Assembly (NCBI RefSeq): GCF_052425735.1
Contig: NC_135770.1
Location: 6,324,001-6,388,000, forward strand
Length of the DNA: 64,000 bases
Reading direction: 5' to 3'
Origin: Oculina patagonica
Taxonomy: Eukaryota
Both the position numbers and the translations under genes were made by a program. A model generated the notes under the pieces. It was given only the letters and a program-made list of their open reading frames with translations. It had not been told where the DNA came from and searched no databases. Shown here one piece after another: positions 43,291 to 46,200 of the stretch. Position 1 is the first letter of the stretch. Each line of letters starts with the position of its first letter.

Positions 43291-46200
43291 TTACGCCTGA
43301 CCATAACACTTGAGTTTTCCTAATGTATGATATCCTTCTTCGTCTGAATTATTCAAGTCTCCCAGTCTGATTTGTGTCACAGGCAGAGCAGACTTGTCTG
43401 TCAACAGACCGCTGTCCTCAAACCAACCAGTGCCACTGTTATCACAGTTACACATTGTACCACCAGTACAAGAGTTTGTTACTCCGCATGCGCACATGTT
43501 GTCATGGCCTGTAGCTCCGCCCCAGTAGTTCATCCGTGTTCCATCACGTGACACCCACCATGCATGACTCTCCTCAATAAACGCCACCTGATTATTGCAC
43601 TCAAACTTGATAAACTGTTCACAGTTCTGTGAGACTCGAGTGAGTGCTGCTAGCTGAGCGGTGTTGACTCCAGTGTATCGCACATCTTTACTGTAACATC
43701 CTGGATTGTCATAACCGCATCCAGAAATGCTAGGGCCAACATGGGTTCTGCTCTCACTATCGTGACTTATAACCGTCACGCCGACACCGCCCTTGTCACT
43801 CATGTCACAATAGACACTGAAGGGAGTCACGCCTCCTTTTCCATCAGGGTCAATCATGTAATAACCTGAATTTCCACCGAAAACCGACTTCAAATCGCTA
43901 CAGGAGGTAAAAGTCGTAGGATCGCCCTTGGGTCCTTCGGGGCCTTGGTTTCCTTTAGGTCCAGGTGTTCCCTGAATTCCCCGAGAACCTTGGTTTCCTT
44001 TTGGTCCCGGAGTACCCTGAATTCCCCGAGTACCTCGGTCTCCTTTCGGTCCTGAAGTTCCCTGAATTCCCCGAGTACCTTGGTCTCCTTTTTGTCCAGG
44101 AGTTCCCTGAATTCCCTGAGTACCTTGATTTCCTTTTGGTCCTGAAGTTCCCTGAATTCCCTGAGTACCTTGATTTCCTTTTGGTCCAGGAGTTCCCTGA
44201 ATTCCCTGAGTACCTTGATCGCCTTTAGTTCCCTGTGATCCTTGCGGCCCTGGTGGTCCATGTTTACCTGGAGAGCCTCTGGGACCAGGCCTACCTCGCC
44301 TTCCTCTGATGCCTCTGGAGCAATGTACATTGCAGACCTGGCTATTTAAAGCAAGTTTAAGTTCTTTCCTTAGGACTTCGCGATCGATGGTTTTGCTGGC
44401 GTTTGCTTCCATATCTGTAGTTTTCACATGGCGTTTGTAACGATTGTGTGGTCCTGCAACTGAAAAATATTGCGGAAATTTTCTGTTGAGATCGCATTAG
44501 ATAAAAGACGAAATGCAAAAAATCTAAAGTTTAGAGCCGGGAAGGGCTACTTAAATATGAAATGTTGTTAACGAGAGTCTGACGACAACTACGAAATCAA
44601 AACAATGATTATTCCCGTATTTTGGGGAAGCGGTTATCTAATGTGTCTGTGCGCGCGGTAACAAAGTAGGATGGAACAATTACGATCTGATCCGGAAAAG
44701 CACGCGACTGGTCCATTTCTATCATTCTCGTCCCCAGAGTCGCTTGTCCTTCTCGGCCGGCTGAGCCTTTGCACGAGAAGCAAGTGGATCTGGGGACACA
44801 TGAGTTGATTGGCTGCATTTTTAACAGGAGGTATAGCCAATCAAACCAACCCTTTTAAAATCCCTTTGTTATACGAGAGCTTGAAACGGTTAATTTGTTT
44901 GGGTAGATTTGAAACGCCATTCGTTAGAATCTAGCCAATCAAATTATGTGTCCCCTGCGCCACTTGTTTGTCGTGCACAGGCTCCGCCGGTTAATTAAGG
45001 GGGACAAGTGGCTCTTGGGACGAGAATGGATTTTTTTCATATTTGGTTTATCAAGTGCTTTGTAAAAATGCATCTAGGGTATTATTCTCAAAATGCGAAC
45101 CACAAAGCATTGTCCTGAGCAATAAGTAGATCTTTAACCCGACCCAGTGGATTATTTTCTCCTACCCAGTTTTGATTTTACCCGCCTATTTTTATGCTTC
45201 CCCAGGACTGTAGAGTGTTTAGTACATGAGAGACGTGCCACGTTAGAGGTTTTTCTCTCGAACGCGAAATCGTGATTTAACACCAGTCAAAGATATTATA
45301 CGGATCTCTAAAGCGCTATGGCATTCGGGAATTCCCCAACTTGAATCGGAGAATTAGTAGAATTTTTATTTTATTGCTTACTTTGCCGATCTAAAATATT
45401 CAGCCTGGCAAGATGCATTAATACATGCAAGTGATTAAAAACACATTCTGCTGATCAATCTGAAATTGATTTCAATCAATTTGTATTTTGATACCAACAA
45501 AATTCCGTCATGTGCTCTGCACACCAACATAACAAGGGCTTTGAGCAGTACAGAGTGATGATATGCTTGAAAGGAAGTCTTAATTCATTGATGCTGAAAG
45601 GTTTAGTTCAGTTTATAAAACTTCTCGCAGCAGGTTCGTTCTTACCATTATGTTTCTAAAAAAAGGAAAGAAAATGAAAGCGATGAATTGCTTTCGCAGT
45701 TATAAAGTTAAAACTTATCGATATCGATGGGTTTGGAGTTGGTCACAATACTGGATTGATGTTCTCCAAACTAGTTTATACTAGTTATGTTAACGCAATG
45801 TGACTTCCCGAGAGTCATGTTTCAACTTCCTTAGTTTCAGCTGTATCTTCTCTCAACTAAATCATTGGGCTACTTACCATCGTTTGAATCACTGTGTAAC
45901 ATTTTCATCACAGACTCATCTTCGTAGTTTGCTGTGTTTCGTAGCTCGAGCTTTTCTTCTTTTTGTTGATTCAAGACTTGAAGCATTTCTCGATGAACGT
46001 GAAGTTCGATCTCGACGTGAATCAATCCCGTGAAGCAAATAACGGAGAGAAATATCGAATGAAAATACCACCGTGTTGGAAACGAGTCGTGTCTTACATA
46101 CCTCAGCCATAATAGCGTTCTTAAAGGCCATGGGCATGAAAACTAACAAGCTTAGAGAAACGTTTTTGATTTAGAGTGTAATCAGTGGGTTTGCGATCAA

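Follow-up and report, generated by a model that had tools for sequence, protein, structure and literature searches.

An Ig-less, collagen-expanded gene of the cnidarian ficolin-like family in Oculina patagonica

The cnidarian ficolin-like proteins (CniFLs), a family that PMC5094078 and PMC4840205 trace to Baumgarten et al. 2015, are putative membrane-anchored receptors of the complement pathway, usually endowed with a transmembrane domain and three immunoglobulin (Ig) domains (PMC5094078; PMC4840205). They were searched for on the basis of the joint presence of collagen, one or more Ig domains and a C-terminal fibrinogen-like domain (PF00147), and the variants reported there have a single Ig domain, lack the transmembrane domain or carry a WAP domain in addition (PMC5094078). 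Here we analyze gene B (RefSeq LOC144637232 / ACROYT_G039809), which is embedded in a window of 64,000 nucleotides (the whole stretch of DNA analyzed, to which all coordinates refer unless otherwise stated) from chromosome CM126647.1 of the stony coral Oculina patagonica, and which harbors a long collagen and no Ig domain. An Ig-less, collagen-expanded CniFL form is not described in PMC5094078. The existing annotation lists the gene as an uncharacterised protein, and its description is not included in the CniFL literature that we examined (PMC5094078, PMC4840205).

The window contains four tandem CniFL genes, all on the minus strand (P1, B, P3 and A), as revealed by tblastn with pieces of two paralogues. 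It also contains five copies of the first exon, an exon that codes for a short N-terminal stretch together with a hydrophobic signal-anchor and a helical segment. The domain order of anchor, collagen, three Ig domains and fibrinogen-like head assigns the array to the CniFL family. Gene B lies inside it, between Ig-bearing copies, and has in common with CniFLs the type II anchor exon, furin site and CxxxC pair, a collagen with the PGKHGP motif and a head that is 80-89% identical to those of its Ig-bearing neighbours. It differs from them in the absence of Ig domains, in a family defined by collagen, Ig and fibrinogen-like domains together, and in a collagen 2.3-2.6 times longer. On the whole, we consider it likely that B truly belongs to a small Ig-less subfamily, which arose once from a three-Ig CniFL in the Oculina lineage. 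Judging from its sequence, B is a real, derived architectural variant of a known family, and it is probably functional.

Structure of gene B and of the Ig-less genes

Exon 2 of B (43291..44459, minus strand) encodes the furin site, the pre-collagen segment, the collagen, the linker and the head. Its acceptor (tttttcag) ends at 44460, in phase 1, and its stop codon occupies 43293-43291; its 389 codons, which include the open reading frame (ORF) 43291-44427 of the minus strand, are open from the acceptor to the stop both in this assembly and in a second one, GCA_044670265.1. Reading in frame along the minus strand, the pre-collagen segment is followed by 44 uninterrupted Gly-X-Y triplets (43918..44313), with the PGKHGP motif near their N-terminal end, then by the linker TTFT (43906..43917), placed between the collagen end (GDP) and the beginning of the head (SCSDLK), and finally by the head itself (43294..43905), a Caspr/COLFI-type "fibrinogen-like" domain according to Pfam, to an AlphaFold2 (AF2) model and to fold searches. 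The collagen, which matched Pfam PF01391 (Collagen) with E = 2.4e-22, has 44 triplets versus the 19 of P1 and P3, and includes six in-frame copies of a 45-bp (15-residue) unit (43963..44232, minus strand), followed by a half-related terminal unit (43962-43918, minus strand) that the neighbours possess too. Counted in frame, B has six copies of the 15-residue unit, and P1, P3 and A have one each; Tandem Repeats Finder (TRF) assigned to positions 43943-44217 a period of 45 bp, 6.1 copies, 89% matches and a score of 417.

No Ig-coding sequence was found at 43291-44469 by tblastn with the Ig exons of the neighbours, and B gave no Ig match in Pfam. The alignment of its DNA with that of the neighbours consists of two blocks (44443-43918 and 43903-43049), between which P1, A and P3 carry 1.1-2.1 kb that are absent from B, that is, the remainder of exon 2 with Ig1, intron 2, Ig2 and Ig3. 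Since Ig2, Ig3 and the head form one continuous exon in P1 and P3, intron 2 is the sole intron missing from B. The bases of the TTFT linker match neither flank of the Ig-bearing genes. The earlier note on this DNA had claimed an in-frame passage from the collagen end through TTFT into SCSDLK, the loss of all Ig domains together with intron 2, and an increase of the 45-bp unit from one to six copies (19 to 44 triplets). The in-frame run was reproduced; tblastn, Pfam and the two-block alignment agree on the loss, and TRF and the in-frame counts on the expansion.

Among the neighbouring genes, P1 (ACROYT_G039808; 38058..41099, minus strand) is made up of an anchor exon, an exon for the collagen (19 triplets) and Ig1, and an exon for Ig2, Ig3 and the head, and P3 (ACROYT_G039810; 52447..56482, minus strand) has the same structure. 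According to Pfam, P1, P3 and A possess Collagen and three I-set Ig domains, and B possesses Collagen and no Ig; in all four genes the C-terminal domain scored above the COLFI threshold and below the Fibrinogen_C one. Paralogue A (58709..62802, minus strand) was the comparator chosen in the earlier note; it is Ig-bearing, but is itself damaged. Indeed, its collagen is broken by two Gly->Glu substitutions (at about 60480-60540), and a 32-bp frameshifting deletion near 59530 falls in the Ig2/Ig3 linker (window 58709-60756). Paralogue A is probably a pseudogene, and P1 and P3 are the better comparators.

The structure of B recurs outside the window. Contig L003 of GCA_044670265.1 is 95.8% identical to B and its flanks over 3.5 kb; its junction sequence is identical to that of B, and it likewise has six units, which differ from those of B at two bases. 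The six units of B mutually differ at 2-8 of 45 positions, and therefore they are not collapsed copies. On the same chromosome as B, at a distance of about 272 kb, a second Ig-less gene is present (LOC144634985, hereafter L001), with 49 triplets and seven units, and GCA_044670265.1 holds two Ig-less genes, L003 and a further one, L002. In all four genes the helix ends with G-D and the head begins with S-C-S exactly five residues on, through the linkers PTTFT (B and L003), SWPYT (L001) and SWPYA (L002). Assemblies are error-prone at tandem 45-bp repeats and in multi-copy arrays, and the earlier note had indicated a misassembly at the junction as the finding that would overturn its reading. However, the junction and the unit number hold in the second assembly, where the junction is identical and the six units are diverged, and a second locus is built alike; we thus reject a misassembly of B and regard an artefactual junction or repeat number as exceedingly improbable. 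The Ig loss and the collagen gain, which had been attributed to B as its own event, are therefore real but not private to it, and pertain to a whole Ig-less subfamily, which has one origin and occupies a second locus.

Origin of the Ig-less genes

A full-length Ig-less protein was used as the query of a search against 5.8 billion proteins. The top matches included no Ig-less, collagen-expanded relative beyond the genes described above, and the other full-length relatives among them, from Oculina, Stylophora, Montipora, Acropora, Porites and transcript-like contigs, all possess three Ig domains. Across the retrieved sequences, the Ig-bearing members (about 35) have 16-22 triplets and a gap of 255-287 residues between collagen and head, the four Ig-less members have 44-49 triplets and a gap of 6 residues, and no intermediates were seen. 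The Ig-bearing layout with 16-22 triplets is shared by Stylophora, Montipora, Acropora, Porites and the scyphozoan Sanderia, and it is also that of Oculina. The sampling of CniFLs in PMC5094078 and PMC4840205 was limited to anthozoans. In a protein of the scyphozoan Sanderia malayensis (P0279) we found the complete CniFL layout, with an anchor, an RRRR site, 22 triplets, three Ig domains and the head, which implies that the three-Ig layout is old in Cnidaria.

In the phylogenetic tree constructed with the pre-collagen segment, the four Ig-less genes fall in a single clade (99/98) that is nested among the Oculina CniFLs. The earlier note had left the choice between Ig loss and Ig gain to a phylogeny, and the nested tree, together with the outgroup architectures, supports the loss. 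The opposite idea, namely that a collagen directly followed by the head is ancestral and that the Ig domains were inserted later, might find support in the amphioxus Branchiostoma belcheri, whose hypothetical protein Bbelb_001260 (P0301) combines a type II anchor, a collagen and the same Caspr-type head with no Ig domain, so that this layout exists outside Cnidaria. Nevertheless, the coral Ig-less genes are nested inside the Oculina CniFLs, their flanking collagen and pre-collagen sequences are near-identical to those of the Ig-bearing neighbours, and both major coral clades, as well as Scyphozoa, possess the Ig-bearing layout. An ancestral Ig-less form is consequently very improbable, and we reject it on the basis of the nested phylogeny and of the outgroup architectures. 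The amphioxus protein resembles B in its anchor, helical segment, collagen, short linker and head (about 47% identity), and differs from it in belonging to another phylum, in a collagen that is short and unrelated to the unit of B, and in having no furin motif; its layout is an independent occurrence, not the ancestor of that of B.

In the tree constructed with the heads, B groups with L003, L001 stands beside one Ig-bearing gene, and L002 joins the A-like genes; an approximately unbiased (AU) test on this tree did not reject a single Ig-less clade (p = 0.22). The 3' half of L002 with its downstream flank (3011-5998 of its contig) matches the 3' region of paralogue A (window 59294-56274) with 96% identity, and B is the closest sequence to its 5' half; from this pattern, L002 reads clearly as a recombinant or a gene-conversion mosaic. 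The splitting of the Ig-less genes into three places of the head tree and the identity between L002 and A point to gene conversion. We also considered separate origins of the two Oculina Ig-less loci, at which the head tree hinted, and rejected them in view of the AU test, and also of the pre-collagen tree, of the common boundary positions and of the common arrangement with two first exons. The simplest reading of these sequences would be one origin, followed by exchange of heads with Ig-bearing neighbours.

According to these data, a single internal in-frame genomic deletion took out the whole interval lying between the collagen helix and the head (Ig1, intron 2, Ig2 and Ig3), and the 45-bp unit rose in number from one to six or seven, possibly by unequal exchange or slippage. 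Both the deletion and the amplification, with no order between them implied, preceded the duplication to the two loci about 272 kb apart; later on, the heads were exchanged with those of Ig-bearing neighbours by gene conversion, and the collagen array diverged with every glycine kept. The unit-by-unit comparison of B and L001, aimed at dating the expansion through the orthology of single units, gave an identity matrix with no clear pattern, the exception being unit 1 of L001, which is identical to the single unit of P1.

Two short proteins (P0130 and P0133), whose N-termini are like the linker of B, were considered as further Ig-less collagens and discarded, as their contigs carry EGF-like sequence or nothing collagen-like upstream. 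Another rearranged layout was observed in Stylophora pistillata, where the CniFL relative P0157 ("brother of CDO-like") passes from the anchor exon straight to Ig2, Ig3 and the head, with neither collagen nor Ig1, as if exon 2 had been skipped or lost.

The head domain and the ficolin-like layout

The head of B was modelled with AF2 on 71 homologues (pLDDT 94.5, pTM 0.90). In Pfam it reached 35.4 bits with PF01410 COLFI (cut-off 26.2) and 19.5 bits with PF00147 Fibrinogen_C (cut-off 22). The nearest fold, over the whole head, is that of the fibrinogen-like domain in the predicted models of Caspr/CNTNAP1/2/5/Neurexin-IV (TM-score 0.86-0.88, root-mean-square deviation about 2 A, 29-34% identity); in the Caspr proteins, however, this domain stands among discoidin, laminin-G and EGF domains, with no collagen stalk. 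The best solved structures are fibrillar procollagen C-propeptides (PDB 5k31, 4ae2), with a Foldseek E = 4e-10, a TM-score of 0.55-0.62 and a VIA Z of 15.7 over 180 residues. Ficolins, tachylectin 5A and fibrinogen gave TM-scores of 0.27-0.30 over 107-142 aligned columns with Foldseek and a VIA Z of 5.7-6.7 over 91-123 residues, and the match of the family profile with solved fibrinogen-related domains is limited to the first 50-65 head positions. A language-model search, to be read as a lead only, ranked collagen-plus-COLFI fragments above ficolin-1-like clusters. The head as modelled is of the Caspr/procollagen-C-propeptide type, not a ficolin-type fibrinogen-related domain, which in ficolins bears the ligand site. 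In coral genomes the head domain of B was also observed after EGF-like domains and as heads repeated in tandem (L005 at about 4500-6627; P0002 and P0077), and it is a mobile module.

These findings bear on the idea, put forward in the earlier note, that B converged on a ficolin-like layout. The domain order stands; the head fold (Z about 6 versus 15.7) and the type II membrane start do not agree with it. Indeed, B shares with the vertebrate ficolins (L-, M- and H-ficolin) an N-terminal cysteine-containing segment, a collagen stalk with Pro-Gly-Lys-X-Gly-Pro and a C-terminal head of the fibrinogen superfamily, and its product would be soluble, as they are, only if shed by furin. The differences are that the match to ficolins covers only about the N-terminal half of the B head (about 100 aligned residues), that B is made as a membrane protein with an anchor and no cleavable signal peptide, and that X is His, not an aliphatic residue. 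As for fibrillar procollagens, they share with B a G-X-Y helix directly before a domain with the COLFI fold (above the COLFI cut-off of Pfam), but the first 38 residues of the C-propeptide, whose aligned part begins with residue 39, have no counterpart in B; moreover, the helix of B is of 132 residues versus about 1000, and B has an N-terminal membrane anchor. The N-terminal segment of the C-propeptide is thought to drive the trimerisation of fibrillar collagens. The layout of B recalls the C-terminal end of fibrillar procollagen as much as it recalls a ficolin.

A further likeness concerns the membrane-anchored, furin-shed collagens (XIII/XVII/XXIII/XXV, ectodysplasin and gliomedin), which are type II proteins with a helical segment next to the membrane and, ahead of the collagen, a furin-type site. 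Their C-terminal domains are unlike that of B.

Selection, stalk length and possible role

We know of no CniFL that has been characterised biochemically, and the features of the B product are here read from conserved motifs. A furin-type R-x-K/R-R site between anchor and collagen is present in 35 of 39 relatives (RYKR in B), a CxxxC pair just before the helix in 38 of 39 and PGKHGP in the helix in 37 of 39, B keeping all three. Thus endowed, the B product would be a type II membrane protein, trimerised probably via the juxtamembrane helix and the CxxxC pair, which would be released at the conserved R-x-K-R site as a soluble, disulfide-stapled trimer; its three Caspr/COLFI-type heads would be joined straight to a rod of about 38 nm, without the three flexible Ig arms in between. 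By analogy with the rest of the family, its most likely role is in innate recognition. In the definition of the MASP-binding motif, Xaa is aliphatic or Met (PMC3179595); B has His at this position, and its PGKHGP may be considered compatible with MASP docking.

The sequences of the Ig-less genes carry traces of selection. The ratio of non-synonymous to synonymous rates (dN/dS) between B and its paralogue L001 is 0.32 overall and 0.23 in the collagen. In the 19 repeat units of three Ig-less genes, just one of the 37 differences from the consensus at first or second codon positions falls on a glycine codon, versus 12.3 expected (P = 6e-6, an approximate value, as the units are not independent). 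On this evidence the glycine periodicity is kept by selection, and the sparing of the glycine codons suggests that the array aged as a working triple helix.

The use of B itself depends on its first exons. The proximal exon 1 (45878..46110, minus strand; ATG at 46110, donor after 45878) has a 1-nucleotide insertion at about 46059, so that a functional B product needs the distal exon 1 (49525..49753, minus strand), which lies 5 kb upstream. The latter has an intact ORF (MEISK...), with a 12-residue N-terminal segment, a 19-residue signal-anchor (mean Kyte-Doolittle hydropathy 2.1) and the consensus donor G/GTGAGT; joined to exon 2 it gives an anchored protein of 465 residues. RefSeq isoform X1 makes this junction; isoform X2 and the GenBank model use the broken proximal exon. 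The recorded gene start coincides exactly with the ATG of an internal MKML, and therefore the RefSeq models carry no 5' information and speak neither for nor against the use of the anchor.

Several points weigh against a functional B. The insertion in the proximal exon 1 precedes the membrane anchor, and the resulting frame reaches a stop inside the exon; the insertion is common to the orthologue L003, and the exon is intact in the paralogue L001. The RefSeq models are predictions, whose coding sequences start at the internal Met (MKML) downstream of the anchor. The dN/dS between B and L003 is 0.65, as calculated on 19 changes only (6 synonymous and 13 non-synonymous), and trimerisation, shedding, MASP binding and ligand recognition are deduced from motifs. 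It might then be that B is a decaying copy, which lost its anchor exon and is drifting with exon 2 not yet broken, and that the Ig-less design may work at LOC144634985; the shared insertion and the ratio of 0.65 speak in favour of this possibility, as does paralogue A, an example of a broken copy that persists in the array. Nonetheless, we regard it as unlikely: exon 2 is open in both assemblies, B keeps all its 44 glycines, the distal exon 1 is intact, has a consensus donor and is spliced to exon 2 in isoform X1, and two variable head loops account for 8 of the 13 non-synonymous differences from L003, the other 5, compared with the 6 synonymous ones, looking constrained. The earlier note had argued that a clean fusion and an unbroken glycine periodicity imply function; a signature of selection is indeed seen on the glycines, but for B itself the argument is weakened by its proximal first exon, which is frameshifted, as is that of its orthologue.

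A question related to function is whether the added collagen compensates for the lost Ig domains, as the earlier note had supposed. Stalk lengths were obtained by arithmetic from established values (0.286 nm per residue; about 12-13 nm for three I-set Ig domains). They amount to 16.3 nm for 19 triplets and 37.8 nm for 44, a gain of 21.5 nm, and the total reach would be about 29 nm in the Ig-bearing forms, about 38 nm in B and about 42 nm in L001. Length compensation by the added collagen is arithmetically plausible, as an order of magnitude only. An adaptive expansion that restored or set the reach of the head after the Ig loss would fit the 44-49 triplets of all four Ig-less genes, the 16-22 of their Ig-bearing relatives with no intermediates seen, the 21.5 nm gained versus the about 12-13 nm lost, and the selection on the glycines. 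However, the single evolutionary origin (n = 1) places the association between Ig loss and collagen gain beyond a comparative test; the length overshoots by 30-45%, and the sister gene, with 49 triplets, is longer still; a rigid common rod is geometrically unlike three flexible arms; and tandem 45-bp units can grow neutrally, or a longer helix may serve thermal stability. We thus consider adaptive compensation doubtful, and retain as the preferred reading a derived, probably functional variant of single origin.

Other observations concern the first exons and the surroundings of the Ig-less genes. Both Oculina Ig-less genes have two first exons (9742-10052 and 14829-15117 in L001), an ordinary distal one and a proximal one whose 5' end (ATGGCTGAG) and donor (GGTAAGTAG) are distinct; in L002 an ordinary first exon lies only about 190 bp upstream of exon 2. 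The head of L003 (P0124) shows a Gly->Cys change in the otherwise conserved DPDGKGG (IDPDGKGC), which adds an odd cysteine, and an integrase-like (rve) ORF is present at 3614-4973 of L001, within the span of the CniFL gene that neighbours the second Ig-less locus on its upstream side.

It is tempting to speculate, albeit as a rather unlikely possibility, that the Ig-less subfamily represents a recent, functionally distinct class of coral recognition molecules, i.e., a furin-shed, soluble, rod-shaped, ficolin-analogous trimer whose heads would cluster on a long collagen stalk retaining the conserved Lys motif for MASP, in which Ig loss and collagen gain were a selected change in reach and valency rather than an accident. 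For the rest, the case is one of ordinary gene-family tinkering by deletion, repeat amplification and gene conversion. The matter concerns a family of putative receptors of the complement pathway (PMC5094078), proposed as pattern-recognition receptors of corals and anemones, and the assignment of the CniFL head to the Caspr/procollagen-C-propeptide type implies that assumptions on ligand binding made for ficolins ought not to be extended to it. In the Ig-less subfamily, nature provides a deletion variant that shares head and anchor with its Ig-bearing parents and stands beside them in one genome, and the two forms offer a ready comparison for the roles of the Ig arms and of stalk length.

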